Shown: piece by piece, positions 992 to 38,025 of the stretch | Numbering within the stretch: the first letter of the stretch is position 1 | How the letters are laid out: every line of letters begins with the position of its first letter | NCBI GenBank assembly: GCA_002269645.1 | Contig: NIVC01001147.1 | Coordinates: 62,001 to 126,000 of the forward strand | Source of the DNA: Macrostomum lignano | Lineage: Eukaryota | Length of the DNA: 64,000 nucleotides | Reading direction: 5' to 3' | The notes under the pieces: generated by a model | Seen by the model: the letters and a program-made list of their open reading frames with translations, nothing else | The model's database searches: none | What the model was told of the DNA's origin: nothing | Program-made: the position numbers and the translations under genes

Positions 992-1043
<52 letters not shown>

Positions 1044-1072
1044 GCCTGCCTGTCTGCCTGTCCATCTGTCTC

Positions 1073-1133
<61 letters not shown>

Positions 1134-1134
1134 G

Positions 1135-1175
<41 letters not shown>

Positions 1176-1186
1176 GCCTGCCTGCC

Positions 1187-1251
<65 letters not shown>

Positions 1252-1265
1252 GAATTTGTCTGTCT
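961..1265. repeat. (TCTG)n microsatellite
   Basis: Read directly from the sequence. Confidence 0.97.
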
Positions 1266-2035: not shown

Positions 2036-2083
2036 TACAACACGAAGCTATATCTGAGAAAGACGCGTCCGTCGGTTACTCAC

Positions 2084-11416: not shown

Positions 11417-11605
11417 GGGATAGAAGGTTACTTAAGATTATGATTAATCTAGTAGAGCACTACCAGAGCATTGGTAATTTCGTGTTTCTCATTTATTCCA
11501 GCAGCTTGAAAACAAATCTAATCGGAAATAGTTTCTTTACTAAAAATATACACCTGCCGTTGTTAAAGAATATCCTGCTTCTACTACTTATTAATACGAG
11601 TAGCG

Positions 11606-14526
11606 ATGAACGAATGCGCAGACTGCAATCGTGGCGGTCAGCCTGGCCGTCTATCGGACTGTCTGCATTGTTCGCGCCGGCTCTGCCCCACCTGTTTAGC
11701 TGGGCACGGGCGAGAGCTGCGGAAACAGGTGCGTCATTTTTACCTGTTTTAACTCGAATTTTGGCTTCTAATATGCATTGTATGAAGTGATACTACTATA
11801 ATCCCATTATTTTGTGTATCTTAAATCATGCACCAAAATGTATTTTTCTTTTATCCTCAAATGTACTTTTTCAGCATCTTTAAAATCTACGAGTAATTTT
11901 CCCCGACCTTCAGATGTGCTATTCTGTATTCTCCGTAAACGCTTTAGCGTTTTTACTGCGTTTTTTTATTGTGCTGCTTTACAGTAGGGGTTTTAGCCCA
12001 GTGGTTAGAGCGGCGGACTCACTACTGAAAGGTCGGGGGTTCGATTCTCGACCCACTCAGAGACACTTTAACTCTCTGCATTGCTTCATTCCACCCAGCT
12101 GTAAAATGGGTGCGAGCATTAGCTGGGGTAATTGAGGTGCGTTTGGCGACCCCCCCCCCCCCCCAGTCCTTGGACTGAACAGCCGTTACGCAGCCTTCAG
12201 ATGCGCCGCGCAATGGCTGCGGCTGAGCTGTCGGTTGCACATCTGCGTTCCTGCGTTTGTTTTTTTTATTTTGGCTTTTGGCTAGCACTGGGAAAGTTGA
12301 AGCCTTTGTCGTCTAACTCCGCGCTTCCCTCGCCTCGCCATCGCAGGCGCTCGACCTCCATGCCGCCGCTGTCGGCCGCCTCGCCGAACTCGCCAACGGA
12401 GAAGCTCGAAATCGCGAACGCGCCGCCGCTGTTGCTTTTTTCGACGAAGCGGCCGCCGCCTTGGAGGACCGTCGGCAGCGCGTGCTTGACCGCCTGGCCG
12501 GCCATGGCGAACTCGACGACCTGCTGGACGAGTGCGGCCGGGCTCTGCGCGCCGTCGACACCGACGACACTGCCGATTCCGACGGCGGCAGAACCAACGG
12601 TGCGGACAAGACGGAGGCGGTGGAAGAGGAGGAGGACATGGAGGAGCTGGTCAGGCTGGTCCGCCTGCTGACGCCCCTGTCCGGTCGGCTGGCCGGGCCC
12701 GAAGGTCCCGTCTGCTGTCTGGAGGAGGCCCAATCTCGACTCTACGACCTCATTGACGCTGTCGACTACGCTATTGAAGCGGCCGACGCTGACGGATTCG
12801 GCAGTCTCGGCCTCGACTTCGAGGCCGACGTGAACTCCGCCGAAGCCGTCGGAACGACGACCCCGTCGTCAGCGACGCCGTCGCCAATGCTGCCTACTTC
12901 TGGCGGTGTCGGCGTCGGTGGCTCCTCGCTAGTCGACGATTTTGATCAACAATTCAGAGACGCCGATCCCGCAGCCGTCGCGTCGGCTCCGCACCGAGAC
13001 GAGCTGGAGTTCTGGGAGACGGATGCCGTCGCTATGGAATCGAGGCTGCGTCCGCGTAAAAAGAAGCGCCGCGGCAAAGTGGAAACTGACTCCAGCTGTC
13101 AGACGTTCAAAGCCGAGGGCCGGCCGGTGTCGCTGACGCATCTCTTAGGAAAATTCTACGCCGTGGAGACCCAGCCAGTGAAATGCGTTCGCGTGTACAA
13201 CCAGGGCGGCAATTTCTTGAACCAGTTGCAGTTTAAAGGCGAACCGGCCGAGACTGGGCCAAAGATTGATCCTTACCGGCTGGTGGCCTGCGCGGTGCGA
13301 GAGTGGCTTCTGTTAGTTGACAACCGTAACGGCTGCCTGCTGACCGTGTGGCCCAGCGGCTATGCGGAGCGCCGCATCGGCCCGGCCGTGTCGGCCAAAT
13401 ATTCGCTTAGCAGGTTTGTCTGCGCCGACTGTTGTTAGATCTGGCGCCTGTTGTTAGATCTGGCGCCTGTTGTTAGATCTGGCGCCTGTTGTTAGATCTA
13501 GCGCCTGTTGTTAGCTCTGGTGCCTGTTGTTAGATATCTGGCACCTGTTGTTAGATATCTGGCGCCTGTTGTTAGATCTGGTGCCTGTTTTTAGATCTAG
13601 CGCCTGTTTTTAAATCGGGTGCCTGTTGTTAGATCTGGTGCCTGTTTTTAGATCTAGCGCCTGTTTTTAAATCGGGTGCCTGTTGTTAGATCTGGCGCCT
13701 GTTGTTAGATCTGGCGCCTGTTTTTAAATCGGGTGCCTGTTGTTAGATCTGGCCCCTGTTGTTAGATCTGGCCCCTGTTGTTAGATCTGGCGCCTGTTAG
13801 TAGAACTTAGCTGCAGTCAGTAGATCTGGCAGCTGTAGTCAGTAGATCCGGCAGCTGTAGTCAGTAGATCTGGCAGCTGTAGTCAGTAGATCTGGCAGCT
13901 GTAGTCAGTAGATCTGGCAGCTGTAGTCAGTAGCTCGCCGCTTCCCGCAGACCAGAAGACGCGGCCACAGACGGCGAGCTGATCTTTGTCTGCTGTCCCC
14001 GTATCGGCGTGTTCATCTTCTCCTGCTCGGACGACTCTGTCCGGGCCACCCTGCCCCAGACTGACCCGGGCTGTCCGGTTCGACTCACCTGGTGTCCGGG
14101 CCCTCGCATCCTAGTTGCCACCCTGCGCTGCAAATCGAATAGATACGAATTTTTAGTACTGGAGGTGACCAATCCGGGTGGCAAGAATCCAGTCCTGTTG
14201 CCCTTGGCATCGGAGTCCTCGGCAAAATCCGACAACAGCTCGTCTGTTAGCCTGGTGTCGGCTGCCCAACCGGCTCTGGTTGCCATTGGCGACCGGTTGG
14301 TTTGCACGAAATCGGCCGAGAACGACTCGTCTGCTGGCTGTCTGATGTCGCTCGATTTGTCCGCCGCCGGCACAGCTGCCGCCGCTACCGCCGACGCGGC
14401 CGTCTGTCTGTTCAAGACTCAGTCTGGCCTGCTGGCCGACCTGTGCGAAGTTACCGACAGTCTGGCTGCCGCCTGCGACCCGCGGCGCAATGTTATCCTG
14501 CTGTTTGACTTGGAGAAGCTGCGGCT
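11606..14526 (+). CDS. RdRP gene exons 1-3: B-box-like zinc finger, coiled coil, acidic linker with basic NLS-like motif, NHL-like beta-propeller
   Basis: Exon 1: MNECADCNRGGQPGRLSDCLHCSRRLCPTCLAGH. Exon 2 has heptad-like helices (RERAAAVAFFDEAAAALEDRRQRVLDRL) and RPRKKKRRGK. NHL-like blades: IDPYRLVACAVREWLLLVDNRNGCL, LSRPEDAATDGELIFVCC, LAAACDPRRNVILLFD. Confidence 0.7.
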
Positions 14527-17500
14527 GTGACTGGCTCTGTTGTGAGGGTGTTGATCTCCCGGATATCACGTGGATTTGGAACCTTAGACAATCTCCCGGA
14601 TATCCCATGGATTTGGAACCATAGACAATCTCCCGGATATCACATGGATTTGGAACCATAGACAATCTCCCGGATATCACATGGATTTGGAACCATAGAC
14701 AATCTCCTGGATATCACATGGATTTGGAACCATAGACAATCTCCCGGATATCACTTGGATTTGGAACCATAGACAATCTCCCGGATATCACATGGATTTG
14801 GAACCATAGACAATCTCCCGGATGTCACATGGATTTGGAACCATAGACAATCTCCCGGATATCACATGGATTTGGAACCATAGACAATCTCCCGGATATC
14901 CCATGGATTTGAACCTTAGACAATCTCCCGGATATCACATGGATTTGGAACCATAGACAATCTCCCGGATATCACATGGATTTGGAACCATAGACAATCT
15001 CTCTCGGATGTCACATGGATTCCGAACCATAGACAATCTCCCGGATATCACATGGATTTGGAACCATAGACAATCTCCCGGATATCACATGGATTTGGAA
15101 CCATAGACAATCTCCCGGATATCCCATGGATTTGGAACCATAGACAATCTCCCGGAATCCCATGGATTTGGAACCATAGACAATCTCCCGGATATCCCAT
15201 GGATTTGGAACCATAGACAATCTCCCGGAATCCCATGGATTTGGAACCATAGACAATCTCCCGGATATCCCATGGATTTGGAACCATAGACAATCTCCCG
15301 GATATCACATGGATTTGGAACCATAGACAATCTCCCGGATATCCCATGGATTAGGAACCATAGACAATCTCCCGGATATCACATGGATTTGGAACCATAG
15401 ACAATCTCCCAGATATCCCATGGATTTGGAACCATAGACAATCTCCCGGATATCCCATGGATTTGGAACCATAGACAATCTCCCGGATATCACATGGATT
15501 TGAACCTTAGACAATCTCCCGGATATCCCATGGATTTGGAACCATAGACAATCTCCCGGATATCCCATGGATTTGGAACCTTAGACAATATCCCAGATAT
15601 CACATGGATTTGAACCTTAGACAATCTCCCGGATATCACATGGATTTGGAACTATAGACAATCTCCCGGATATCCCATGGATTCCGAACCATAGACAATC
15701 TCCCGGATATCACATGGATTTGGAACCATAGACAATCTCCCGGATATCCCATGGATTTGGAACCATAGACAATCTCCCGGATATCACATGGATTTGAACC
15801 TTAGACAATCTCCCGGATATCTCATGGATTTGGAACCATAGACAATCTCCCGGATATCACATGGATTTGGAACCATAGACAATCTCCCGGATATCACATG
15901 GATTTGGAACCATATACAATCTCTCTCGTATGTCACATGGATTTGGAACCATAGACAATCTCCCGGATATCACATGGATTTGGAACCATAGACAATCTCC
16001 CGGATATCACATGGATTTGGAACCATAGACAATCTCCCGGATGTCACATGGATTTGGAACCATAGACAATCTCCCGGATATCACATGGATTTGGAACCAT
16101 AGACAATCTCCCGGATATCCCATGGATAAAATCTCCTAAATATTCCTTGGATAAATCTCCCATATATTATTTGGATTTGCTGCTGAAAATCCGATTACAA
16201 AAATTCAGACTCCCAGAGCCTAATTCTCGTACCGTTTAACAACTGACACAATTTTTAATTTTGAAAATATTTTCTTAATGCAGATTAAAGAATCCCATTT
16301 TGCTTTCACTTCTAGTCTGGTGTCGAAGTTTTCCTCTCTCTGATCAAATTTTTTTGCTGGCTGTAGACAACATTCTAACCATTCTCGATCGTACAGTCCG
16401 CAATCTCCCACAATCTGGCCACATCATAATTTGTTTTAATGTTTTTCCTAAATATTTCGCGCCTTTTTTAAAAATTAACAGAGAATTTGGCCCTGTGTTT
16501 CGCCTTGTTGATGGAATTTCGAATTTTTAATGATTTCTTTTCCTTTTTCCTTACTGTTAGTAGCACAGTAAGGACTTTTGGACTTTTAAAAACAACTGTT
16601 TTCTTATTTAAAACCGTCAATTAGAAAACAGATATAGTCATTCCGGTCTTTGTACTTTTTCGATCTTTCTGCTATGTAATTTCTTTCGTCTTGTCAGAAA
16701 ATAATGTTTATAATCTCTTCTTTTTGATATTATTATTTATTATCAATTTTTGTTAATTTTTGATGAATTTTCTAATACAAATTTAATAATCTGACCCAGG
16801 TTATGACAAAAGTAACCCCGTTATTGAGCTATTGATTAATTGAACTCTTAAACTGCTGAACATACTACTATCGCATGAGTAGTTTCGGTTTCGTGAAATC
16901 ATAAAATAAGCTATTTTTTACAATTTATACTTAAGGTTGCCTTCCAGTTGTTAACTGTTTATTTTCTTTGATGAGAATTTTATTCACTGTTGATACATTG
17001 GATATTGCGGTCTAACAATCTTTAAAGTTTATTATACTCTTTTTGGTTTCTGAGTTTAACTTTTGTTTTTTTAAATAATTTTTCTCTAATCTCGTTTTAT
17101 CGGATTTGCAACTCGAATGCATGCTGAAACGTTGTGTAATGTTCGCCTCTATACTCATAATTATGCAGGTGTTGTTAATCTCACGGTCTGTGCATTTTTC
17201 TGCAAATAAGCCCCCTCCCTACCTCACAGCCCCATCCCACTGCCCCTACATCCCCATCCTCTCTCCCCCACATCACCATCCCACTCCCCCACAGCCCCAT
17301 CCCACTCCCCCACAGCCCCATCCCACTCCCCCACAGCCCCATCCCACTCCCCCACAGCCCCATCCCACTCCCCCACAGCCCCATCCCACTCCCTCACAGC
17401 CCCATCCCACTCCCCTACAGCCCCATCCCACTCCCCTACAGCCCCATCCCACTCCCTCACAGCCCCATCCCACTCCCCTACAGCCCCATCCCACTCCCCT

Positions 17501-20500
17501 ACAGCCCCATCCCACTCCCTCACAGCCCCATCCCACTCCCCTACAGCCCCATCCCACTCCCTCACAGCCCCATCCCACTCCCCCACAGCCCCATCCTACT
17601 CCCTCACAGCCCCATCCCACTCCCCTACAGCCCCATCCCACTCCCCCACAGCCCCATCCCACTCCCCCACAGCCCCATCCCACTCCCCTACAGCCCCATC
17701 CCACTCCCCCACAGCCCCATCCCACTCCCCTACAGCCCCATCCCACTCCCCTACAGCCCCATCCCACTCCCCCACAGCCCCATCCCACTCCCCTACAGCT
17801 CCATCCCACTCCCCCACAGCCCCATCCCACTCCCCTACAGCCCCATCCCACTCCCTCACAGCCCCATCCCACTCCCCCACAGCCCCATCCTACTCCCTCA
17901 CAGCCCCATCCCACTCCCCTACAGCCCATCCCACTCCCCCACAGCCCCATCCTACTCCCTCACAGCCCCATCCCACTCCCCTACAGCCCCATCCCACTCC
18001 CCCACAGCCCCATCCCACTCCCCTACAGCCCCATCCCACTCCCCCACAGCCCCATCCCACTCCCCTACAGCCCCATCCCACTCCCCACAGCCCCATCCCG
18101 CTCCCCTACAGCCCCATCCCACTCCCTCACAGCCCCATCCCACTCCCCACAGCCCCATCCCACTCCCCTACAGCCCCATCCCACTCCCCCACAGCCCCAT
18201 CCCACTCCCCTACAGCCCCATCCCACTCCCCTACAGCCCCATCCCACTCCCTCACAGCCCCATCCCACTCCCCCACAGCCCCATCCTACTCCCTCACAGC
18301 CCCATCCCACTCCCCTACAGCCCCATCCCACTCCTTCACAGCCCCATCCCACTCCCCCACAGCCCCATCCCACTCCCCCACAGCCCCATCCCACTCCCCT
18401 ACAGCCCCATCCCACTCCCCCACAGCCCCATCCCACTCCCCTACAGCCCCATCCCACTCCCTCACAGCCCCATCCCACTCCCCCACAGCCCCATCCTACT
18501 CCCTCACAGCCCCATCCCACTCCCCTACAGCCCATCCCACTCCCCACAGCCCCATCCCACTCCCCTACAGCCCCATCCCACTCCCCCACAGCCCCATCCC
18601 ACTCCCCTACAGCCCCATCCCACTCCCCCACAGCCCCATCCCACTCCCCTACAGCCCCATCCCACTCCCCCACAGCCCCATCCCACTCCCCTACAGCCCC
18701 ATCCCACTCCCCTACAGCCCCATCCCACTCCCTCACAGCCCCATCCCACTCCCCCACAGCCCCATCCTACTCCCTCACAGCCCCATCCCACTCCCCTACA
18801 GCCCATCCCACTCCCCCACAGCCCATCCCACTCCCCTACAGCCCCATCCCACTCCCCACAGCCCCATCCCACTCCCCCACAGCCCCATCCCACTCCCCAC
18901 AGCCCCATCCCACTCCCCCACAGCCCCATCCCACTCCCCTACAGCCCATCCCACTCCCCTACAGCCCCATCCCACTCCCCACAGCCCCATCCCACTCCCC
19001 CACAGCCCCATCCCACTCCTCACAGCCCCACCTCACTGCCCACAGCCCCATCCCAACCCCATAACCCCACCTCACTGCCCACAGCCCCATCCCAACCCCC
19101 CACAGCCCCACCTCACTGCCCACAGTCCCACCTCACTGCCCACAGCCCCATCCCAACCCCCCACAGCCCCACCTCACTGCCCACAGCCCCACCTCACTGC
19201 CCACAGCCCCATCCCAACCCCCACAGCCCCACCTCACTGCCCACAGTCCCACCTCACTGCCCACAGCCCCATCCCAACCCCCACAGCCCCACCTCACTGC
19301 CCACAGCCCCACCTCACTGCCCACAGTCCCACCTCACTCCCCTACAGCCCCATCCCACTCCCCTACAGCCCCATCCCACTCCTTCACAGCCCCATCCCAC
19401 TCCCCCACAGCCCCATCCTACTCCCTCACAGCCCCATCCCACTCCCCTACAGCCCATCCCACTCCCCACAGCCCCATCCCACTCCCCTACAGCCCCATCC
19501 CACTCCCCCACAGCCCCATCCCACTCCCCTACAGCCCATCCCACTCCCCTACAGCCCCATCCCACTCCCCCACAGCCCCATCCCACTCCCCCACAGCCCC
19601 ATCCCACTCCTCACAGCCCCACCTCACTGCCCACAGCCCCATCCCAACCCCCATAACCCCACCTCACTGCCCACAGCCCCATCCCAACCCCCACAGCCCC
19701 ACCTCACTGCCCACAGTCCCACCTCACTGCCCACAGCCCCATCCCAACCCCCATAACCCCACCTCACTGCCCACAGCCCCATCCCAACCCCCCACAGCCC
19801 CACCTCACTGCCCACAGTCCCACCTCACTGCCCACAGCCCCATCCCAACCCCCCACAGGCCCACCTCACTGCCCACAGTCCCACCTCACTGCCCACAGCC
19901 CCATCCCAACCCCCCACAGCCCCACCTCACTGCCCACAGTCCCACCTCACTGCCCACAGCCCCATCCCAACCCCCCACAGTCCCACCTCACTGCCCACAG
20001 CCCCACCTCACTGCCCACAGCCCCATCCCAACCCCCCACAGTCCCACCTCACTGCCCACAGCCCATCCTACCCCATCAGAGTTAGTTAGCCACAGAGGAA
20101 TCTCACATCACCCGCCCTGTCAGTGTATACACCTCTGCCTCCCATCTCATCGATTTTTCAAGGTAATTGTTTTGCTTGCAAATTTCATTTTTTAATAAAA
20201 AAATTTCGAAAGCATTCCATTAGCAGCAGTCACGGTGGGCTAGTATAGTGTGTCTCAATAGTTGTATTATTTACAAAGCAGCTATATACTTAATACCAGG
20301 CATTGTTATTACATTCCATACTCTGAGCTCTGACTAGAACATTTTTTATCTCAATTTTTTAGTAACGCACTTGCCCTAATGGCTGATTTTTTCCGGCCTG
20401 TTATAAAAATATTCGCCGCACTTCCAGATATTGTTGCTAACTTTTATTTGTTTTATTTACGCTGGTACTCTTGTCTTTAGGTGTTGGACTTCGTTTTTTG

Positions 20501-26500: not shown

Positions 26501-29500
26501 CTGTAAAAGGAGGCTAAAATGTACTTTAAAAGCGTTTAATTGCACTTTTAAAGAGTAGTCGAGATGTACTTTAAAGAGTGGTCGAGATGTACTTTAAAGA
26601 GTGGATAAATGTACTTTAAAGATTGGCCGAGTTGTACTTTAAAGAGTGGCTAAATTTACTCTAAAGTGTAGTGGAGATGTACTTTAAAGAGTGTACTTTA
26701 TAGAGTGGCCTAGGTGTATTCTTACGAGCGGCTAAAATTTATTTTGAAAAGTGGCTGAAGTGTACTCTATAGAGTAGCCAAGATGTTTCTAATTAAGAGC
26801 GCAAAGATAATGAGTTGAGGATCCTCATCCCGCAGACCTGTTGCCTCTGCATCAAGCTGAGCCGTACCACTACCCAGCTGCCGAGGTGCCTGCATCTGTC
26901 AGGCCGCCGACAAAAAATGATCTTATCCGGCACTTTGCCAGCCAGAATAAATTTCATGCTGTCACGTCAGAAATCGACACTCTGTACAAGAGCTGGGCAG
27001 ACAGCCTGGGGCCGGACTGCTGGCAGTGCTGTGAACTCGGCCGTCTGTTCTCCCGCGCCGTTGACGCCGCAAAGTCTGGCGAGTTGGTGAGCATCGACCC
27101 GAAGCTCCGGTTGCCGACGGCAGCAGGTGCAGCAAACCCCAGAGAATTCGTCTGGCAGCGAATGCTCGCGAGAGGTCGAAGACTGCGGAGCGATCTGTTT
27201 GTCAAAGCCGCTGTTGCCGCCCGAGCGACGGCGGCGACAACCAAAACCGACGACGATAGCTATCCGACCCTCACGGTGGACAACGTTCGGCCGGAGTTTG
27301 TCGTCGACCTGTTGAGCAGTCGGCACGAGTTCGGACGGATCAGCGAGTTTTGCAAATTCCAGTTCGCTTGGGATTTCTGTCGGGCCCGGTGCGAGCAGGT
27401 GGAAGGTGAGGAGGGAAGGTGGAAGGTAATTTTTCTTAGATGCCAGCACTGGCTTCCTATCGTCTTGGCGCCACTCCTATCATCCTGGCGCCACTCCTAT
27501 CATCTTGGCGCCACTCCTATCATCTTGGCGCCACTCCTATCAGCCACTCCTATCATCTTGGCGCCACTCCTATCAGCCACTCCCATCATCTTGGCGCCAC
27601 TCCTATCATCTTGGCGCCACTCCTATCATCTTGGCGCCACTCCTATCATCTTGGCGCCACTCCTATCAGCCACTCCTATCATCTTGGCGCCACTCCTATC
27701 ATCTTGGCGCCACTCCTATCATCTTGGCGCCACTCCTATCAGCCACTCCTATCATCTTGGCGCCACTCCTATCAGCCACTCCCATCATCTTAGCGCCACT
27801 CCTATCATCTTGGCGCCACTCCTAAGTGCCATTCCTACTATCTGAGTGCCATTTCTACTATCTGAGTGCCATTCCTACTATCTGAGTGCCATTTCTACTA
27901 TCTGAGTGCCATTTCTACTATCTGAGTGCCATTCCTACTATCTGAGTGCCATTCCTACTATCTGAGTGCCATTCCTACTATCTGAGTGCCATTTCTACTA
28001 TCTGAGTGCCATTCCTACTATCTGAGTGCCATTTCTACTATCTGAGTGCCATTTCTACTATCTGAGTGCCATTCCTACTTTCTGAGTGCCATTCCTACTA
28101 TCTGAGTGCCATTTCTACTATCTGAGTGCCATTCCTACTATCTGAGTGCCATTTCTACTATCTGAGTGCCATTCCTACTATCTGAGTGCCATTCCTACTA
28201 TCTGAGTGCCATTCCTACTATCTGAGTGCCATTCCTACTATCTGAGTGCCATTCCTACTATCTGAGTGCCATTCCTACTATCTGAGTGCCATTCCTACTA
28301 GCTGAGTGCCATTTCTACTATCTGAGTGCCATTCCTACTATCTGAGTGCCATTTCTACTATCTGAGTGCCATTCCGACTATCTGAGTGCCATTCCTACTA
28401 TCTGAGTGCCATTCCTACTATCTGAGTGCCATTTCTACTATCTGAGTGCCATTCCTACTATCTGAGTGCCATTTCTACTATCTGAGTGCCATTTCTACTA
28501 TCTGAGTGCCATTCCTACTATCTGAGTGCCATTTCTACTATTTGAGTGCCATTCCTACTATCTGAGTGCCATTCTTACTATCTGAGTGCCATTCTTACTA
28601 TCTGAGTGCCATATCTACTATCTGAGTGCCATTTCTACTATCTGAGTGCCATTCCTACTATCTGAGTGCCATTCCTACTATCTGAGTGCCATTCCTACTA
28701 TCTGAGTGCCATTCTTACTATCTGAGTGCCATTCTTACTATCTGAGTGCCATTCCTACTATCTGAGTGCCATTCCTACTATCTGAGTGCCATTCCTACTA
28801 TCTGAGTGCCATTCCTACTATCTGAGTGCCATTCCTACTATCTGAGCCACCTAAACCTACTCTGCAGACAGCAGGACGATGCTCAAGGACGCCTACACCG
28901 ATCTGGTAGACTTTGGCAAGTTCAGTCTCGATCAGCAGCGAATCGCAATCCACGAGATCGGCCTGCCAGCGCCTCTGGTGCTCAACGCGCTGAACAAGTC
29001 GCGCCTGCTCGCCAGGCCGGACGACCGGTCAGCTTTCGGCTTGGCCGGCGTGGACTGTCGATGGCGGCTGTACTTTCGGCGCGGCCAGTCCGAGTTCGAC
29101 TGGGCCCACCTGCTGCGCGGTCTGGAGCGGCATTCTAAAAGGTGAGACTTCCCTCGCGTTTAGGCGTGACAATTAACTGATGAAGCCAAGACATTGGAGC
29201 TGGAAAAGATTCTGGGGATCTGAGAGAAATTAGAGATTGGGAATTGAGAATAGGGATCTGAGAGTGAGATTAGGGATCTGAGGGTGAAATTAGGGATTTG
29301 AGAGTGAGATTAGGGATCTGAAAGTGAGATTAGGGATCTGAGAGTGAGATTAGGGATTTCAAAGTGAGATTAGGGATCTGAAAGTGAGATTAGGGATCTG
29401 AGAGTGAGATTAGGGATCTGGGAGTATTATTAGGGATTTGAAAGTGAGATTAGGGATCTGAGAGTGAGATTAGGGATCTGAGAGTGAAATTAGGTATCTG

Positions 29501-32500
29501 AGAGTGAGATTAGGGATCTAAGAGTGAGATTAGGGATCTAAGAGTGAGATTAGGGATCTGAGAGTGAGATTAGGGATCTAAGAGTGAGATTAGGGATCTG
29601 AAATTGAGATTAGGGATTGGGAAGTGAGATTAGGGATCTAAGAGTGAGATTAGGGATCTGAGAGTGAAATTAGGGATCTGAGAGAGAGATTAGGGATCTG
29701 GGAGTGAAATTAGGTATCTGAGAGTGAAATTAGGGATCTGAGAGTGAGATTAGGGATCTGGAAGTGAAATTAGGTATCTGAGAGTGAAATTAGGTATCTG
29801 AGAATGAAATTAGGTATCTGAGAGTGAGATTAGGGATCTGAGAGTGAAATTAGGGATCTGAGAGTGAGATTAGGGATTGGGAAGTGAGATTAGGGATCTG
29901 GGAGTGAAATTAGGTATCTGAGAGTGAGATTAGGGATCTGAGAGTGAAATTAGGGATCTGAGAGTGAGATTAGGGATTGGGAAGTGAGATTAGGGATCTG
30001 GGAGTGAAATTAGGTATCTGAGAGTGATATTAGGGATCTGAGAGTGAGATTAGGGATCTGACAGTGAGATTAGGGATTGGGAAGTGAGATTAGGGATCTG
30101 AGAGTGATATTAGGCATCTGAGAGTGAGATTAGGGATCTGAGAGTGAGATTAGGCATCTGAGAGTGAGATTAGGCATCTGAGAGTGAGATTAGGGATCTG
30201 AGAGTGAGATTAGGCATCTTAAAGTGAGATTAGGGATCTGAGAGTGAGATTAGGCATCTGAAAGTGAGATTAGGGATCTGAGAGTGAGATTAGGGATCTG
30301 AGAGTGAGATTAGGCATCTGAGAGTGAGATTAGGGATCTAAGAGTGAGATTAGGGATCTGGGAGTGAAATTAGGTATCTGAGAGTGAGATTAGGGATCTG
30401 AGAGTGAGATTAGGGATTGGGAAGTGAGATTAGGGATCTGGGAGTGAAATTAGGTATCTGAGAGTGAGATTAGGGATCTGAGAGTGAAATTAGGGATCTG
30501 AGAGTGAGATTAGGGATTGGGAAGTGAGATTAGGGATCTGGGAGTGAAATTAGGTATCTGAGAGTGATATTAGGGATCTGAGAGTGAGATTAGGGATCTG
30601 ACAGTGAGATTAGGGATTGGGAAGTGAGATTAGGGATCTGAGAGTGATATTAGGCATCTGAGAGTGAGATTAGGGATCTGAGAGTGAGATTAGGCATCTG
30701 AGAGTGAGATTAGGCATCTGAGAGTGAGATTAGGGATCTGAGAGTGAGATTAGGCATCTTAAAGTGAGATTAGGGATCTGAGAGTGAGATTAGGCATCTG
30801 AAAGTGAGATTAGGGATCTGAGAGTGAGATTAGGGATCTGAGAGTGAGATTAGGCATCTGAGAGTGAGATTAGGGATCTAAGAGTGAGATTAGGGATCTG
30901 GGAGTGAAATTAGGTATCTGAGAGTGAGATTAGGGATCTGAGAGTGAGATTAGGGATCTGAGAGTGAAATTAGGTATCTGAGAGTGAGATTAGGCATCTG
31001 AGAGTGAGATTAGGGATCTAAGAGTGAGATTAGGGATCTGGGAGTGAAATTAGGTATCTGAGAGTAAAATTAGGTATCTGAGAGTTAGATTAGGGATCTA
31101 AGAGTGAGATTAGGGATCTGAGAGTGAAATTAGGGATCTGAGAGTGAGATTAGGGATCTGAGAGTGAGATTAGGGATCTGAGAGTGAAATTAGGTATCTG
31201 AGAGTGAGATTAGGTATCTGAGAGTGAGATTAGGGATCTAAGAGTGAGATTAGGTATCTGAGAGTGAGATTAGGGATCTGAGAGTGAGATTAGGGATCCG
31301 GGAGTGAGATTAGGGATCTGAGAGTGAGATTAGGGATCTGAGAGTGAGATTAGGGATCTGAGAGTGAAATTAGGTATCTGAGAGTGAGATTAGGTATCTG
31401 AGAGTGAGATTAGGGATCTAAGAGTGAGATTAGGGATCTGAGAGTGAAATTAGGTATCTGAGAGTGAAATTAGGTATCTGAGAGTGAGATTAGGGATCTG
31501 AGAGTGAAATTAGGGATCTGAGAGTGAGATTAGGGATTGGGAAGTGAGATTAGGGATCTGGGAGTGAAATTAGGTATCTGAGAGTGAAATTAGGGATGTG
31601 AGAGTGAGATTAGGGATCTGAGAGTGAGATTAGGGATCTGAGAGTGAGATTAGGGATCTGAGAGTGAGATTAGGGATCTGAGAGTGAGATTAGGGATCTA
31701 AGGGTGACATTAGGGATCTGAAATTGAGATTAGGGATTGGGAAGTGAGATTAGGGATCTAAGAGTGAGATTAGGGATCTGAGAGTGAAATTAGGGATCTG
31801 AGAGAGAGATTAGGGATCTGGGAGTGAAATTAGGTATCTGAGAGTGAAATTAGGTATCTGAGAGTGAGATTAGGGATCCGGGAGTGAGATTAGTGATCTG
31901 AGAGTGAGATTAGGGATCTGGGAGTTAAATTAGGTATCTGAGAGTGAAATTAGGTATCTGAGAGTGAGATTAGGGATCTAAGAGTGAGATTAGGGATCTG
32001 AGAGTGAAATTAGGTATCCGAGAGTGAGATTAGGGATCTAAGAGTGAGATTAGGGATCTGGGAGTGAAATTAGGCATCTGAGAGTGAGATTAGGGATCTG
32101 AGCGAGAGATTAGCCCAGTCTAATTGAATTGAAATCCCAACATTCTGTTTAGCCTTCTCGTGCTGCGTCTGCCAGACCAGCTGTGCCTCGCCCTGCTGTT
32201 CCAACGGCAGCTGACAATCTGCGAACGGGCTGACATGCCTCCGGACAGTGTCCGGGCGTTTTTCTTCTCCGGCCTGCTCAACTGCCGTAGGCAGCACCGA
32301 CTGAGTCCGGGACACAGCCTGGACTTATCGGAGCACTCGTTGCAGCTCTACAAAGGCGATCGCATGGGCACTTTTGTGTGGCTGAATGACGGCGGCGGGC
32401 CCGACGGCCTGACGTCTATCAGCGTAGACCTGACCCGGTTCGACTTGCCTGGCAACAGGAGGCGGGCGCAAGCTGGCATGCTGGTACGGAAGGTGCCATT

Positions 32501-34511
32501 TATTGAGGCCGAGATGTTCGTGCTCGAGTCTGCCCAGGGCGACCCGGCGGACGGGCGGGCCACTGGCTATCTGGATGTGGCCGATGTCAACTGGTGGGCC
32601 GCTGATGTCCGACAGGTGAGATCTGCGTGGGAGCAACTCATCTAGACAGTGATTTTGTAGATCTAGACAGTGATTTTGTAGATCTAGACAGTGATTTTGT
32701 AGATCTAGACAGTGATTTTGTAGATCTAGACAGTGATTTTGTAGATCTAGACAGTGATTTGTAAATATAGGCAATAGTTTTGCAGATCTAGACAGTTATT
32801 TTGTAGACCTAGACAGTGATTTTGTAGATCTAGACAGTGATTTTGTAGATCTAGACAGTGATTTTGTAGATCTAGACAGTGATCTTGTAGATCTAGACAG
32901 TGATTTTGTAGATCTAGACAGTGATTTTGTAGATCTAGACAGTGATTTTGTAGATCTAGACAGTGATTTTGTAGATCTAGACAGTGATCTTGTAGATCTA
33001 GACAGTGATTTTGTAGATCTAGACAGTGATCTTGTAGATCTAGACAGTGATTTTGTAGATCTAGACAGTGATTTTGTAGATCTAGACAGTGATCTTGTAG
33101 ATCTAGACAGTGATTTTGTAGATCTAGCCTCTCCAGCAGTGCACTCTCCCGTCTCCTTCTGCCCAGGTCGAGTTCCCAGCTCCCAACCGGCCCCAACTGG
33201 CTCACGCAGTCAACGAGTTCGTCGACCCGATGCTGCTGCAGCCGCCGTCCCACGATTCAATGCCTTCGCCGACTCCGACGCTGCAGTGCCTGGACGCGGC
33301 CGTCGCCTTTGCCTCGCCTCGCTTGTTCATCGACTCGCTGCGCGCGTGGCCACCGTCGGAGCTTGGCTCGGTGCCAGACCGCCTGCGGGCCCTGCTAGAC
33401 CGTCTGCATTTGCTGGCGGCTCCGAGGCCGCTGCCAGCCTCAGCTCTGGCCGACATCGACAAGATTGTCGCTCAGCTGTTCTTCGACCCAGCTTCCGTCA
33501 GGTTCGGAGACCAGCCGTTTGTAGGGCTACTGGAACTGTTCACATCGCTGCGACGCCTGGCTGCCGACGCCACCGCTGACCGTCTGCTGTCGTCGCTTTT
33601 ATCGCTAGCCGAAGCTTCCACCGCCGAGCTGCTGGACGTTGCCGGCGCCTGGCACTGCTGGTGGCCGCTGCTCCACGTTGCCGCCAGTTCGCCTGCCGTA
33701 GCACAGAGATTTGCTGAACAACTTCTACTGTCGATGTTGACGGAATCTACTAGGGTGTCGCCGCTGACGCCGGTGCATCGGTATCTGCGGCGCCAGGCCT
33801 GGCTGGCCTGTCAGGGATTTCTGAGCGGCTGTCAATCATCCGGCCTGTCGGCTGACAGCTGGGAGTCCGACCGGTCGGTGCCGGCGGAGACTGTCGAGCC
33901 TGCGAATCCCGCTAACGAACTGTCGGAGTTTTGGCTGACAAGTCGGGCGCCGATTGACTGGCAGCGACATCAGCCGCGCCCAGGCCGGTTTATGTCGCTG
34001 CTGCTGGCATCGGCGACTTCGGCTGGCGGCTTCTGCTGCCTTGTTCAAGTTGTCGCCTGTCGGCGTCTGGACGACGGTCGAGCCTTGGTCTGTCTGCGCG
34101 GCTTGGACTCGCGCGGCTGCCTCCTAACAACGCTGCCGGCTTGTTGGCAGGGCGGCGGCTGCTGGCAGCTGCGCGAACCTCCTGCGGGTGGCATCGACAG
34201 TTACAGAGAAGTGTTTGACGCTCTGAGACGCTGCCTCCGGGCTGCTGACAACGAGGAGAATATTGGCAACGATCGGCTGTTGAAGCGAGCGCTCGATCTG
34301 CTGGCTGATCCGCGGGCCACCCGAAAGAGTCGCCGCTGGCCCGCTTCGAGTGCACGGGTCACGTGACTCGGTGGCTCGCAGAAACCGTCGCTCTTAGAGT
34401 GCGTGAGACTGCGGCTTGAGTTGATAGCTCGTAATAGTGCATCTTTGGACACGTTGCTGCAGCATACTTATCCCTATCTTTACCTCGTTTATCCTCTTCA
34501 TTATCATCATT

Positions 34512-34586
<75 letters not shown>

Positions 34587-34805
34587 TACCTCATCCTCAT
34601 AATCATATTCCCTATCCTTGCTCCAAAACAGCAGAAAGCTGTGTCGCTAAGCGCGGATATCGACGCAGATTTAGAGCGGCTCGACGCCTCGCAACGGGCC
34701 GCGCTGGCAGTCGTCCTGAGTTCGAAACCGGATCCAGGCCTGCTGTTCATCGGCGGGCCGCCGGGCACGGGAAAGTCCGCGCTGGCCGTCAGCATCGTCT
34801 GCCGG

Positions 34806-34837
<32 letters not shown>

Positions 34838-36419
34838 ATCGTTTCTGCCGATTTTCCTCTGCGCCCAGTCCGACGCCGCTCTCGACAGTCTGGCTCGACG
34901 GCTGCGCCTCGCCGCTCCGTGCCTACTGCTGCTCCGCCTGCCATCGTCTGGCCTCGTCGCTCCCGACGTCGCCGATCTGACAATCGACGCGCAAATCCAA
35001 CGTCGACGCCTGGAAGAGTTCGGCACGGATGACGACAGTTTAAACGACAGCCAGACGATGCAGCAGCGCCTTCTGCGCTCCGCCGACGTGATTCTGGCGT
35101 TGTCGACGTCGATTGGCGGCTTGTACGACGTCCGGTTTTCCTTGGCGCTGATTGACGATGCAAACGAGTCGCCCGAGTCGGCCGCGCTCTGCGCTCTGGC
35201 CCGATGCTCCAGGCGTGTCGTGCTGCTGGGAACTGACCATCGGCTAGCGGTGGCGGCGGCAACGACGTCGAACGCCCTGGCGCTGACTGTGCAGCACCGG
35301 ATGCGGCCGGAACTGGCCAGCCTGCCCAGCCGATGCTTCAGCTGGCCGGCACTCGAGATGCCGGCGCCGCCGCCCACCCTGCCGCCGCCGATGGTTTTTC
35401 CCGCTGTCTGCTTTATCAACTGCGATGAAGGCTCGGCAGCTTCATCTATCGAGCTGATTGACCGGGTTCTCGCTGTTCTACTGGAAACTGAATCTTTGGA
35501 AGCCATTGCCGTCCTGACACTGTCAGGTGCGTCCGATCGGGTTGGCCAATCCTTGCACCTTCGGGATGTTCAGGTGGCTAGCATTGATGAATTCCGTGGT
35601 CTCGAGACCGACTTTGTCATTGTACATGCAGATGCCAATAGCTTGCTGTCTGATGCTGAGCAGTCGGATTTTGAAGTTCTCTTTACGCGAGCGAGACGTT
35701 GTATTGTTGTCATTGGCGACCGGGTTGCTATGGAGACCAGCTCGAATATCTGGTGCAATTGGCTGTCGCAGGCTGAAGAGATTTCGGAATGCCAACTTTG
35801 GAATCAGAGTAACGGCGCCCGGAAGCAGTTGAGTCAGGGCGGTAAACATCAGAGAGACCGAGGAGGCAAACCATCTGCTCGCGGCGGCGGTGATCAAAGA
35901 GGCGGACAATCTGCTCGCGGCGGCAGAGATCAGAGAGAATGGCAATCTGCTCACGGCGGTAGAGATCAAAGAGAATGGCAATCTGCTCGCGGGGGCAGAG
36001 ATCAAAGAGAATGGCAATCTGCTCGCGGGGGCAGAGATCAAAGAGAATGGCAATCTGCTCGCGGCGGCAGAGATCAAAGAGAATGGCAATCTGCTCGCGG
36101 CGGCAGAGATCAAAGAGAATGGCAATCTGCTCGCGGCGGCAGAGATCAAAGAGAATGGCAATCTGCTCGCGGCGGCAGAGATCAAAGAGGCGGACAATCT
36201 GCTCGCGGCGGCAGAGATCAAAGAGAATGGCAATCTGCTCGCGGCGGCAGAGATCAGAGAGAATGGCAATCTGCTCGCGGCGGCAGAGATCAGAGAGAAT
36301 GGCAATCTGCTCGCGGCGGCGGAGATCAGAGAGAATGGCAATCTGCTCGCAGCGGCGGAGATCAGAGAGAATGGCAATCTGGTCGCGGCGGTAGAGATCA
36401 AAGAGGCGGACATTATTAA
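11606..36419 (+). CDS. Multidomain cellular RNA-dependent RNA polymerase: B-box/coiled coil/NHL-like propeller + RdRP + UPF1/ZNFX1-like SF1 helicase + RGG-repeat tail
   Basis: Phase-consistent exons: 11606-11728, 12347-13413, 13951-14526, 21705-22124, 22849-23368, 23724-24017, 24547-24733, 25020-25210, 26024-26441, 26836-27405, 28868-29141, 32153-32615, 33167-(34357 or 34402), 34632-36419. RdRP motifs: NRLID, YLGCSSGGLK, KRQARIGLLFS, FTDGCGSVS, PSVYQIRYRGYKG, LNRQFITLLSGLGV, LFGVCD, KSPCYLLGD, HLVDCIVFP, SGSDLDGDQFFVCWD, SRAVDAAKSG. Helicase motifs: LDASQ, GPPGTGKS, QHRM, TRAR. The exon 13/14 junction is uncertain. Confidence 0.85.
11987..12163 (+). mobile_element. tRNA-derived CORE-type SINE in RdRP intron 1
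   Basis: A box (TAGCCCAGTGG) and B box (GGTTCGATTC), followed by CACTTTAACTCTCTGCATTGCTTCATTCCACCCAGCTGTAAAATGGGT, which resembles the CORE domain of MIR-like SINEs. Confidence 0.7.
13430..13930. repeat. Two adjacent minisatellites (19-bp TTGTTAGATCTGGCGCCTG; 22-bp CAGTAGATCTGGCAGCTGTAGT) filling RdRP intron 2
   Basis: Read directly from the sequence. Confidence 0.93.
14555..16127. repeat. 37-bp minisatellite (ATGGATTTGGAACCATAGACAATCTCCCGGATATCAC), RdRP intron 3
   Basis: About 42 copies, identical units with no unique spacers. Confidence 0.96.
17210..20065. repeat. C-rich 21-bp minisatellite (CAGCCCCATCCCACTCCCCCA) and derivatives, RdRP intron 3
   Basis: Accounts for the 652-aa PQPHPTP pseudo-ORF. 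Confidence 0.96.
20835..21660. repeat. 24-bp minisatellite (CATCCCTACATCCATAAAACCCTA), RdRP intron 3
   Basis: Read directly from the sequence. Confidence 0.95.
22220..22650. repeat. 59-bp composite minisatellite, RdRP intron 4
   Basis: Alternating GGGAATCGTGAATGATGAGACGTGAGGATCA and GGTAATCGTGAATGGTGATACATGATTT half-units. Confidence 0.92.
22849..27405 (+). CDS. RdRP gene exons 5-10: cellular RdRP catalytic domain
   Basis: Full ordered set of eukaryotic RdRP motifs across six exons; the catalytic DLDGD is in exon 26024-26441. Confidence 0.95.
23430..25960. repeat. Intron-specific minisatellites in RdRP introns 5-8: 24-bp (23430-23610), 27-bp (24060-24490), 21-bp (24775-24955), 42-bp (25240-25960)
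   Basis: A different tandem unit in each intron, between conserved RdRP exons. Confidence 0.9.
27465..28848. repeat. Two abutting 20-bp minisatellites (TCTTGGCGCCACTCCTATCA; TGCCATTCCTACTATCTGAG), RdRP intron 10
   Basis: Read directly from the sequence. Confidence 0.95.
29240..32110. repeat. 20-bp minisatellite containing TTAGGG (GAGTGAGATTAGGGATCTGA), RdRP intron 11
   Basis: About 140 units; TTAGGT and TTAGGC variants occur. Confidence 0.97.
32640..33127. repeat. 21-bp minisatellite (TAGATCTAGACAGTGATTTTG), RdRP intron 12
   Basis: Read directly from the sequence. Confidence 0.95.
34500..34587. repeat. (CAT)n microsatellite in the intron before the helicase exon
   Basis: Source of the poly-H, poly-I and poly-M pseudo-translations in the ORF track. 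Confidence 0.95.
34632..36419 (+). CDS. RdRP gene terminal exon: SF1B (UPF1/NAM7/ZNFX1-like) helicase plus QREWQSARGGRD repeats
   Basis: LERLDASQRAAL...LLFIGGPPGTGKS...CAQSDAALDSL...LIDDANE...LLGTDH...LTVQHRMRPELA...VASIDEFRGLETDFVIV...VLFTRARRCIVVIG. Stop TAA at 36417-36419 overlaps an AATAAA. Confidence 0.85.
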
Positions 36420-37815: not shown

Positions 37816-37958
37816 ATGCCTGGTCGAGTCTCTTTAGTCAGCAGGACGACGTCCGCGACCATGCGGCTGGTTACGCGGCGTTGGTGCAGCGGCAGCTCCA
37901 GCGGAGCAGCAAGCGGTGGCAGTCAGCAGCGTCAGCAGCAATCAGCGGTGAGCTGATG

Positions 37959-38025
<67 letters not shown>

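Follow-up and report, generated by a model that had tools for sequence, protein, structure and literature searches.

A Macrostomum lignano locus that most likely holds two neighbouring genes, one TRIM-NHL-like and one belonging to an RdRP/UPF1-like-helicase fusion family

Pairing of a eukaryotic RdRP with a helicase on template RNA is familiar from two complexes. The RDRC of S. pombe is composed of Rdp1, Hrr1 and Cid12, and in C. elegans EGO-1 and RRF-1 work with DRH-3 and ZNFX-1; Hrr1 and ZNFX-1 are both SF1 UPF1-like helicases, and in both complexes the partners are separate polypeptides, whereas the family considered here carries them in one chain. Such a fusion has been noted in amphioxus, where a single predicted protein of Branchiostoma lanceolatum, BL02069, is described as an RdRP with an intact catalytic site together with an AAA_12 domain (PMC6396948). 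RdRP-dependent small RNAs were not found in amphioxus and a role unrelated to RNAi was suggested (Pinzon et al. 2019, PMC6396948); for animals other than nematodes, the function of eukaryotic-type RdRPs is an open question (PMC6396948). In their count of RdRPs, Fontenla et al. 2017 (PMC5594548) give four for M. lignano and none for the other flatworms. These are of the same species and gene family as the RdRP gene described below, whose helicase fusion, TLDc-fold domain and RGG tail go unmentioned there.

The DNA analysed (the window) is a 64,000-nucleotide stretch of M. lignano contig NIVC01001147.1. A sequence-only reading had proposed that positions 11606-36419 encode one protein of about 2,700 aa in which a B-box-like Zn finger, an NHL-like propeller, an RdRP, an SF1B helicase and RGG repeats follow one another. 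All of these modules do lie on the + strand, and the fourteen coding segments can be joined, as had been claimed, in consistent phase by GT-AG joins into a stop-free frame of 2,721 aa; it is the single chain that is unsupported. Positions 11606-36419 most likely represent two neighbouring + strand genes, gene A (11606-14530, three exons, 589 aa) and gene B (ATG at 21679 to the stop at 36419, eleven exons, corresponding to exons 4-14 of the earlier reading). We consider it fairly probable that gene A is TRIM-NHL-like, that gene B is a member of an RdRP/UPF1-like-helicase family, and that gene B acts by the mechanism proposed below. Gene A and the spacer that follows it are as follows:

11606-11728, + strand: gene A exon 1, start ATG and B-box-like zinc finger (UniProt A0A1I8JA16 match)
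12347-13413, + strand: gene A exon 2, probable helical/coiled-coil region, low-complexity linker and first propeller blades (paralogue homology)
13951-14530, + strand: gene A exon 3, remaining NHL-like propeller blades, ending at TGA 14528-14530 (AF2 model, paralogue C-termini)
14531-21671, no strand: probable intergenic spacer (intron 3 of the earlier reading), three minisatellite arrays and two AT-rich unique stretches

The N-terminus of gene A has the pattern C-x2-C-x11-C-x2-C-x4-C-x2-C-x3-H, a spacing that we take to fit B-box type 1 through the seventh ligand, the eighth lying 11 residues further on. An M. lignano UniProt entry, A0A1I8JA16 (P0033), is 100% identical over aa 1-202, has its exon 1/exon 2 join in the identical place, and carries the name 'B box-type domain-containing protein'; the top PDB matches of the finger are the B-boxes of TRIM3 and TRIM28, though these are weak (E ~0.2). 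Residues 291-589 form a six-bladed propeller in an AF2 model (pLDDT 81, pTM 0.84), which Foldseek matches best to NHL domains in the PDB, those of TRIM71, Thin, Brat and TRIM2/3 (TM 0.62-0.71), with WD40 propellers close behind (TM 0.5-0.57). The B-box-like and NHL-like assignments of the earlier reading agree with the Cys/His pattern, the UniProt name and the propeller model; Pfam finds neither a B-box nor an NHL repeat in the window protein. Pfam also finds no RING in gene A, and the B-box-like finger opens the protein directly. The likeness to TRIM-NHL proteins (TRIM71/LIN-41, Brat, Thin/TRIM32, TRIM2/3 and C. elegans NHL-2) includes the B-box-like finger, the modelled propeller and the probable helical/coiled-coil region, and the differences include the missing RING and the missing Pfam matches to B-box and NHL.

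Exon 2 of gene A matches M. lignano paralogues P0034-P0044 with E values from 2e-22 to 5e-8, and the intron position at the exon 2/3 junction is common to gene A and its paralogues. One of them, P0034, contains a single borderline Pfam NHL repeat (21 bits against a cut-off of 20), and the B-box cysteine/histidine pattern is absent from all four paralogues whose N-termini were inspected. The matches to the gene A family found here are confined to M. lignano, and at another locus, L005, the paralogues are annotated as individual genes arranged in tandem, and no RdRP lies close to them. Gene A is most likely a RING-less TRIM-NHL-like protein from a lineage-expanded family of stand-alone genes, and by analogy with TRIM71, Brat and NHL-2 its propeller probably binds RNA or protein.

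If genes A and B were to form one 2,721-aa protein, the TRIM-NHL-like module would have to be spliced from 14526 to 21672 onto the RdRP-helicase-RGG chain. The donor needed for this is a GT inside the stop codon (CTG TGA, 14525-14530; GCT/GTGACT), and it does not fit the M. lignano donor motif GT[G/A]AG (PMC8629364). Using a matrix built from 10 secure donors of this same locus only, it scores 0.0 bits, which ranks it at the 65th percentile among the GT dinucleotides of the window, as a random GT might rank, compared with 4.3-11.5 bits (leave-one-out) for the secure donors themselves. A stop-free 14-exon frame with GT-AG borders nonetheless exists, with both parts on the same strand 7.1 kb apart, but agreement in phase is expected by chance one time in three. 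Exon 3 ends in LEKLRL-TGA precisely where paralogues P0040, P0044, P0034 and P0035 end in an alignment of C-termini. On the other side of the gap exon 4 opens with MRLILCG, and its Met aligns with the N-terminus of the Dreissena homologue (MVNIILCG..., family pattern M-x-x-I-L-C-G); because this is where the Dreissena protein begins, we conclude that exons 4-14 most likely constitute a second gene. No TRIM-NHL module is present in the RdRP homologues found in Dreissena, in Volvox, and at L001, L002 and L003.

The gap itself can be read in two ways. Its minisatellite arrays (14554-16127, 17225-20068 and 20833-21665) reach from the gene A stop to the exon-4 acceptor in a manner similar to the arrays that occupy the true introns, and the exon-3 stop has no canonical poly(A) hexamer near it; the first such hexamer is ATTAAA at 16284, 1.75 kb downstream, unlike in paralogue P0040, which has AATAAA after 225 nt. 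Both observations would suit an intron. However, the arrays occupy 5,251 bp of the 7,141-bp spacer and leave about 1.9 kb of AT-rich unique DNA, while the other introns are no longer than 3 kb and almost wholly array. The case for separation rests on this comparative and splice-signal evidence. The single 2,721-aa protein appears very improbable, and the "super-protein" with its four modules is most likely an artefact that arises when a stop codon is read through. Nor is the exon 13/14 junction the only ambiguous one, as had been stated, since the exon 3/4 donor overlaps a stop codon, and exon 13 too meets an in-frame TGA (34364-34366).

Two separate genes could still be transcribed together, as cistrons of one SL-resolved operon encoding co-expressed functional partners. 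They are adjacent and on the same strand, no poly(A) hexamer lies near the 3' end of gene A, and the exon-4 acceptor TTGCAG fits the M. lignano trans-splice acceptor motif (PMC8629364), although it is equally an ordinary strong cis acceptor. Operons contain 15% of M. lignano genes, and repeats inflate the spacers within them (PMC8629364); after adjustment for repeats the spacer between A and B is still about 1.9 kb, above the 1-kb threshold used in that study. Moreover, an SL-derived ATG joined at 21672 would be out of frame, and the gene A paralogues sit in arrays that lack an RdRP. We consider an operon unlikely. The parts of gene B are as follows:

21672-22124, + strand: gene B exon 1 (exon 4 of the earlier reading), acceptor TTGCAG, ATG at 21679, vestigial AAA_28-like NTPase with P-loop apparently lost (homologue N-termini)
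22798-23368, + strand: exon 2, linker and N-terminal RdRP (Pfam PF05183; tblastn to L001, L002, L004)
23724-24017, + strand: exon 3, RdRP (Pfam, tblastn)
24547-24733, + strand: exon 4, RdRP with IRYRGYKGVL motif (Pfam, tblastn)
25020-25210, + strand: exon 5, RdRP (Pfam)
26024-26441, + strand: exon 6, RdRP catalytic core, DLDGD at 26402-26416 (Pfam)
26836-27405, + strand: exon 7, C-terminal RdRP, then the beginning of the helical linker (Pfam; donor AAG/GTGAGG)
28868-29141, + strand: exon 8, helical linker and start of predicted TLDc-fold domain, WRLYFRRG at 29062 (homologue conservation, AF2/Foldseek)
32153-32615, + strand: exon 9, rest of predicted TLDc-fold domain (homologues, AF2/Foldseek)
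33167-34363, + strand: exon 10 (exon 13 of the earlier reading), poorly conserved central region (homologue alignment)
34364-34366, + strand: in-frame TGA, 36 nt (12 codons) upstream of the only consensus donor
34403-34631, + strand: intron in phase with the exon 13 frame and occupied by an (ATC)n microsatellite, donor GTGAGA, acceptor ...AAAACAG
34632-35837, + strand: last exon, UPF1-like SF1B helicase core (Pfam AAA_11/AAA_12, PDB UPF1 match)
35838-36419, + strand: RGG-rich tail, 17 RGG in 194 aa, stop TAA 36417-36419, AATAAA 36419-36424

The RdRP had been correctly recognised. Pfam PF05183 matches the window protein at E=2.7e-94 (317 bits, profile positions 43-546 of 582), and the catalytic DbDGD motif, as defined in PMC6396948, is present within GSDLDGDQFF. 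Pairwise scores across the RdRP core are 171-285 bits in all pairs, M. lignano included; the catalytic motif is intact, and the core is as conserved as in the orthologues. We have revised the exon 10/11 junction of the earlier numbering to 27405/28868, which has a stronger donor (10.2 bits) and fits the homologues better.

Upstream of the RdRP, the homologues begin with sequences such as MVNIILCGSPGSRKS in Dreissena and IILCGASSIGKST in P0051. Gene B has MRLILCG followed by FASANS (FxxANS) and YRSSLVVL (YRxSLVVL) in the family order; its first exon resembles AAA_28-type NTPases weakly (profile P ~0.002, hhalign E=0.11, pairwise z=2.5) and contains no P-loop, which appears from the sequence comparison to have been lost. 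Downstream of the RdRP, the exon 8 region is conserved in P0051, P0052, P0009 and Volvox, and a structural model of the post-RdRP region, of moderate confidence (AF2 pLDDT 65), has TLDc entries as all of its top 15 Foldseek matches in the PDB, among them OXR2 (4acj, E=2e-5, TMt 0.63), NCOA7, TBC1D24 and mEAK7. The model thus places a predicted TLDc-fold domain after the RdRP, although the Pfam TLDc profile is unmatched in the window protein and in the Dreissena, L003 and P0051 homologues. No Pfam family was found in the central region that follows, and exon 10 ends in a conserved W-x-L...Y-x-R-x-x-x-A-L motif that precedes the helicase in homologues.

This arrangement is that of a family whose domain order, in a single chain, is AAA_28-like NTPase, RdRP, helical linker and TLDc fold, variable centre and UPF1-like SF1B helicase, to which some members add an RGG-rich tail. 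Members occur in Dreissena, in Volvox and on ENA contigs related to rotifer RdRPs, and BL02069 of amphioxus is probably another. Gene tables list a 1,941-aa product of Dreissena polymorpha and a 1,950-aa product of contig L002, each with RdRP and AAA_11/12, and at L003 a single ORF of 1,341 aa spans the latter half of the TLDc domain, the central region and the helicase. At the Dreissena locus (L004, beside LOC127868002, GCA_020536995.1 CM035916.1) one ORF, collinear with gene B and continuous over the stretch of the locus analysed, runs from the NTPase through the RdRP, a region that aligns with the TLDc-type domain and the central region into the beginning of a UPF1-like helicase; identity between the protein and the window model is 35% over aa 816-1721. 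It differs from gene B in that the part seen is intronless and the P-loop is intact, and its visible helicase start is canonical (GPPGTGKT...AETNVAVD). In Volvox reticuliferus, Vretifemale_12713 (P0001, 3,061 aa) has an RdRP, the post-RdRP domain and C-terminal AAA_11/AAA_12 collinear with gene B, matching window aa 832-1658 and 2144-2493 at about 30% identity; unlike gene B it has long low-complexity insertions and canonical helicase motifs, and no NTPase vestige is recognised in it. RdRP plus SF1 helicase is already in public databases and was noted for BL02069 (PMC6396948), which counts against the novelty that had been suggested. Gene B is a new member of an architecture that is represented there and functionally unstudied.

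The helicase belongs to the UPF1 side of the UPF1/ZNFX1 type to which it had been assigned. The last exon matches AAA_11 at 7e-16 and AAA_12 at 2.6e-8 in Pfam, and UPF1 (2xzo) is the best PDB match both for the window protein (8e-12) and for the L001 orthologue (3e-55), for which ZNFX1 (9q9z) ranks below UPF1 and SEN1. At E<=0.1 Pfam finds no zinc-finger family, the NFX1 type included, in any part of gene B, a difference from ZNFX-1. Walker A (GPPGTGKS, 34755-34778) is intact, but motifs II (DEx), III (GDxxQL), V (QGRE) and VI (RxNVxxTR) are degenerate in the M. lignano copy, which reads DDAN, GTDHRL, FRGLE and DFEVLFTRAR where L001, L003 and Volvox keep the consensus. With the consensus of these motifs lost, the protein keeps the helicase fold but is probably inactive as a helicase. 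Pairwise helicase scores are 81-109 bits between M. lignano and the others and 192-216 bits among the other three.

Collinearity by BLAST with P0001, L001, L003 and L004 extends along gene B, and linkage of RdRP to helicase is a family trait (the Dreissena ORF, L002, Volvox); in M. lignano the chain is broken by the TGA at 34364-34366 unless a weak donor is used. A TGA 12 codons before the consensus donor implies use of a weak upstream donor (giving 2,130 aa), a nonsense change or base error, or a split copy. Reading on to the TGA from Met 21679 gives 1,537 aa without helicase or RGG, and a quite possible, if not probable, alternative is that gene B is truncated or split in the genome copy, so that these 1,537 aa, comprising NTPase vestige, RdRP, TLDc and central region, are the whole product. 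The helicase-RGG frame would then be 3' UTR following a recent nonsense mutation, the apparent victim of a base-call error, or a downstream cistron trans-spliced at 34632 with the SL ATG in frame (ATG/CAG CAG AAA...).

The splice signals are in keeping with such truncation. Positions 33100-34700 contain just one GT[G/A]AG donor, at 34403, downstream of the TGA; its phase agrees with that of the acceptor at 34632, and the frame is open between TGA and donor. Donors that would avoid the stop are weak (2.1 and 6.2 bits), and the 6.2-bit one pairs only with poor acceptors. The helicase, with its degenerate catalytic motifs, is also far more diverged than the RdRP, and together with the TGA this could mean that it is non-functional in the M. 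lignano copy. Yet the helicase exon has no stops in 402 codons, where the other frames have 12-15, and its codon-position GC pattern is that of the other exons, from which we infer that it is, or was very recently, translated. RdRP and helicase share one chain in the Dreissena ORF and in the L002 and Dreissena gene-table products, and no poly(A) hexamer was found between 34367 and 34631. As to a split into cistrons, the gap from TGA to helicase measures 265 bp, of which about 100 bp are microsatellite, the M. lignano SL ends in ATG, and repeat-adjusted operon spacers are typically about 100 bp (PMC8629364); the acceptor AAACAG, however, is unlike the trans-splice motif [T/C]TNCAG (PMC8629364), and the first in-frame Met of the helicase exon falls after Walker A.

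Under the reading that we favour, with gene B an RdRP/UPF1-like-helicase family member, the RdRP would copy target RNAs, and the attached UPF1-like module, probably hydrolysis-impaired in M. lignano, would chiefly hold or remodel the template in the manner of an RNA clamp or loader. The protein would bring into one covalent chain what Rdp1-Hrr1, or EGO-1 with DRH-3/ZNFX-1, achieve as partners, and by analogy with these a role in small-RNA amplification is plausible; that none of the RdRP-dependent kind were detected in amphioxus, which has such a gene, counts against it. As a 'Rosetta stone', the fusion supports direct partnership of RdRP and helicase. It is an unlikely proposition that the single NTPase-RdRP-TLDc-helicase(-RGG) chain amounts to a complete RDRC-like machine with its own separate role, coupled in M. 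lignano to the upstream TRIM-NHL-like protein. Such a machine might act in antiviral or transposon RNA surveillance, or might produce long RNA, antisense or double-stranded, in place of classical secondary siRNAs, and the coupling might occur by operon-like co-expression or rare splicing. If this were true, M. lignano, which is amenable to RNAi and to transgenesis, would be a genetically tractable animal for finding out what non-nematode animal RdRPs do. The RdRP of this locus belongs to a widely distributed, unstudied family of fusions with a UPF1-like helicase, a TLDc fold and an NTPase. In the M. lignano copy the helicase is decayed and the in-frame stop is suspicious, and the public models of this gene that were examined are RdRP fragments (P0002, 585 aa; P0003, 270 aa).

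The RGG-coding tail is present in the sequence as had been described, with its 17 RGG motifs, although its linkage to the chain is interrupted by the TGA upstream; where translated it would add non-specific RNA binding or partitioning into condensates. Most of it is a 36-bp x 14.8 tandem array (35873-36405), a young minisatellite that is open in all three frames and has an atypical GC3 of 0.35. No RGG tail is present in L003 or seen in the Volvox region aligned. The L001 homologue, in which RdRP and helicase come in the same order, also ends in an RGG-rich low-complexity tail.

The window DNA is eukaryotic, with GC-rich coding blocks separated by introns that consist almost entirely of private-minisatellite sequence. 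The 14 coding segments previously recognized on the + strand between 11.6 and 36.4 kb were reproduced, and GT-AG joining does yield a 2,721-aa frame free of stops. The observations of the sequence-only reading are confirmed in part, and its interpretation is supported in part: gene B is an additional member of an RdRP-helicase fusion family that is known in databases and uncharacterised, and it lies beside an unrelated TRIM-NHL-like gene. The probable genes of the window, and one further ORF, are as follows.

11606-14530, + strand: gene A (exons 1-3), with a B-box-like finger and an NHL-like propeller, ending in a TGA stop at 14528-30
21679-36419, + strand: gene B (exons 4-14), encoding an RdRP and a UPF1-like helicase
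37950-42650, + strand: next downstream, a gene of acyl-CoA synthetase / 4-coumarate-CoA-ligase-like type (Pfam AMP-binding, 6.5e-38; AMP-binding_C, 2.3e-22)
53495-53902, + strand: a zinc-finger-looking ORF with a C-x2-C...C-x2-C...C-x2-C cluster (CQVCKRQLANPRRCHRCRQTVCADC) and no Pfam match at E<=0.001

Three of the features proposed earlier are present in gene B. There is a complete eukaryotic RdRP (PF05183, E=2.7e-94 in Pfam) with an intact active site, DLDGD being encoded at 26402-26416; the last exon encodes an SF1 helicase core (AAA_11, 7e-16; AAA_12, 2.6e-8); and the C-terminal tail is a tandem array (36 bp x 14.8) that codes for 17 RGG motifs and is followed by a TAA stop with an overlapping AATAAA. 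Pfam gives no match to exons 1-3 or to exons 11-13. The helicase had been described as UPF1/ZNFX1-type, of which the first half stands, UPF1 being its nearest relative, followed by SEN1 and ZNFX1; gene B contains no NFX1 fingers, and we reject membership of the ZNFX1 group.

The claim that the TRIM/NHL module shares a chain with the RdRP most likely fails at the exon 3/exon 4 junction. Four M. lignano paralogues align end to end with exons 2-3, their termini lying 0-4 residues from the TGA at 14528-30, and in the Mlig_3_7 assembly these paralogues are separately annotated genes in a tandem array with no RdRP nearby. The exon-3 donor needed for the longer chain is a GT straddling the stop codon (GCT|GTGACT), which does not fit the species donor motif GT[G/A]AG (PMC8629364). 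Under a matrix derived from the locus's 10 secure donors it reaches 0.0 bits and ranks at the 65th percentile of all GTs across the window, against 4.3-11.5 bits for the secure donors themselves (leave-one-out). The 7.1-kb gap between the genes includes 1.9 kb of AT-rich unique DNA, from which the true introns differ. On its other side, exon 4 has a TTGCAG acceptor directly before MRLILCG, with the ATG at 21679, and it retains M-x-x-I-L-C-G, FxxANS and YRxSLVVL in the order seen in the family, the P-loop of this putative, degenerate NTPase having been lost. Its resemblance to AAA_28 is suggestive only (profile P ~0.002, hhalign E=0.11, pairwise z 0-2.5), and Pfam reports no match to that domain. 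Because exon 4 matches the family N-terminus and the paralogues end at the exon-3 stop, we place the gene boundary within 14530-21672.

The N-terminal module is real, yet most likely belongs to a gene separate from the RdRP-helicase. This boundary is placed by comparison and splice signals; against it, the first canonical poly(A) hexamer after gene A comes only at 16284. An operon-type link between the two genes is possible and is not favoured, since PMC8629364 sets a criterion of 1 kb and the spacer, adjusted for repeats, measures ~1.9 kb.

Database entries from M. lignano bear on both genes. The UniProt entry A0A1I8JA16 (204 aa, 'B box-type domain-containing protein') shows 100% identity to residues 1-202, and its exon 1/exon 2 join is exactly that of the gene A model. 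It begins MAM-NEC where the window at 11597-11608 reads GTA GCG ATG (V-A-M). Trans-splicing of the spliced leader, with its ATG, onto the AG at 11602-03 was considered as the origin of the extra residues 'MA' and dropped, because the junction (ATG CGA TGA) is out of frame. No protein in a library of 1.84 billion representatives exceeds 37% identity to exons 2b-4, and gene models spanning the junction are therefore not recoverable from protein databases. RdRPs are already known from M. lignano, in contrast to other flatworms (PMC5594548; bioRxiv 10.64898/2026.03.11.711021); two M. lignano RdRP entries (P0002, P0003) are fragmentary, mis-modelled versions of gene B. We also note two public models, P0045 (1,733 aa) and P0050 (1,497 aa), in which TBP, spectrin and Ig domains are attached to the propeller family; both models are probably chimeras of neighbouring genes, and they call for caution in using the annotation of this repeat-rich genome.

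The RdRP-helicase part of the architecture is already present in public databases, as its occurrence in Dreissena, three ENA contigs, Volvox and amphioxus attests. The Dreissena polymorpha homologue is a single unbroken ORF with the N-terminus MVNIILCGSPGSRKS, in which an AAA_28-like NTPase, the RdRP, a post-RdRP domain, a central region and then GPPGTGKT...AETNVAVD follow one another; the annotated product has 1,941 aa with AAA_11 and AAA_12. AAA_28 is likewise fused to the N-terminus of the RdRP in P0051, P0052 and P0055 (ENA-contig homologues and a related named Rotaria protein). Among the contigs, L002 lists a 1,950-aa product with RdRP and AAA_11/12, of which the fetched locus covers only the first 681 residues; in L003 the post-RdRP domain is divided, its first half sitting with the RdRP and its second half in a 1,341-aa ORF that also holds the central region and the helicase; and L001 has RdRP, helicase and an RGG-rich low-complexity tail in that order. 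The Volvox reticuliferus protein (3,061 aa) is collinear with the window model, and Pinzon et al. report an AAA_12 domain on the amphioxus RdRP BL02069 (PMC6396948). The fusion is conserved, and as judged from these sequences RdRP and helicase belong together across the family. Beyond the one-line note on BL02069, we found in the literature no fusion of an RdRP with a UPF1-like, TLDc or AAA_12 domain, and no functional description of the RdRP-helicase architecture.

On the ENA contigs, which are related to rotifer RdRPs, AAA_28-RdRP-helicase genes are tandemly duplicated in L002 (9521-12313 and 19088-21131+) and in L003 (7807-17931); the upstream L002 copy, broken into several short ORFs, is pseudogene-like and adjoins an intact one whose listed product has 1,950 aa. 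Upstream of the RdRP-helicase gene of L001, the interval 135-3343 holds a 764-aa ORF with a GTGKT P-loop-like motif and no recorded Pfam match, together with an ORF that has a weak Death domain. Both lie on the same strand, in a setting reminiscent of invertebrate innate-immunity genes.

Directly after the RdRP lies a domain (28868-29141 and 32153-32615) that is conserved across the family. Its model suggests, with moderate confidence, a TLDc fold like that of OXR1/2, NCOA7 and TBC1D24; all of the top 15 PDB matches are TLDc-domain entries (best E=2e-5, TMt 0.63). Pfam does not detect TLDc here in any family member tested, and we found no published link between TLDc and RdRPs.

The RdRP core of gene B is as conserved as those of its orthologues, every pair scoring 171-285 bits. 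Divergence is far greater in its degenerate helicase, which scores 81-109 bits against the other members, whereas these (mollusc-like, rotifer-like and algal) score 192-216 with one another; in the gene B helicase Walker A is kept, and other motifs are changed (DEAx to DDAN, GDxxQL to GTDHRL, FQGRE to FRGLE and RxNV to DFEV). Since the motifs beyond Walker A are degenerate, we would expect at most an ATP-binding clamp and no active translocase. Where the last exon encodes the helicase, 402 codons run without a stop, against 12-15 stops in the other frames, and GC by codon position follows the pattern seen in the remaining exons; this part is therefore translated now or was until very recently.

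How the helicase is joined is less clear, as the exon 13 frame terminates at TGA 34364-66. The sole consensus donor in 1.6 kb, GTGAGA at 34403, lies 36 nt downstream of this TGA and is in phase with a good acceptor at 34632, the frame between TGA and donor being open. The TGA may accordingly be a nonsense change specific to this copy or a base error, with a product of 1,537 aa if it is read. Another possibility is splicing around it through a weak donor to give a 2,130-aa fusion; the donors that avoid the TGA are weak or have poor acceptors only, and the enumerated micro-exon paths, many of them frame-compatible and none with consensus donors, are uninformative. More speculatively, gene B could be split into two cistrons, a spliced-leader ATG being in frame at 34632.

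Rdp1-Hrr1 and EGO-1 with DRH-3/ZNFX-1 are partnerships of which the gene B chain may be a covalent analogue. The RdRP would copy target RNA, and the tethered UPF1-like module and RGG tail could keep the template in place and determine where the enzyme localises. A small-RNA product is to be viewed cautiously, because no RdRP-dependent small RNAs were found in amphioxus (Pinzon et al., PMC6396948).

For gene A, 'TRIM/NHL-like', without a RING, is a fair label, because residues 291-589 form a six-bladed propeller in a confident AlphaFold model (pLDDT 81, pTM 0.84) that matches NHL domains best, and the first 41 residues have Cys/His spacing of B-box type. In the PDB the propeller scores highest, at TM 0.62-0.71, against NHL domains from TRIM71, Thin, Brat and TRIM2/3, and WD40 propellers follow closely; the top matches of the finger by sequence are the B-boxes of TRIM3 and TRIM28, weakly, and Pfam gives the finger no match. 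Membership of the RING-type TRIMs is rejected. In an exhaustive HMMER scan, the only proteins with the module are those of one M. lignano family, ~400-830 aa long. Gene A probably encodes a TRIM-NHL-like factor that acts independently and binds RNA or protein.

In almost every intron of the two genes (window 11000-37500), a minisatellite private to that intron takes up the space, with units of 19-59 bp in up to 145 copies; the array edges are at most a few tens of bases away from the splice sites. The acyl-CoA synthetase-like neighbour is likewise broken up by minisatellite-filled introns, and the coding RGG tail is one further array of this kind.
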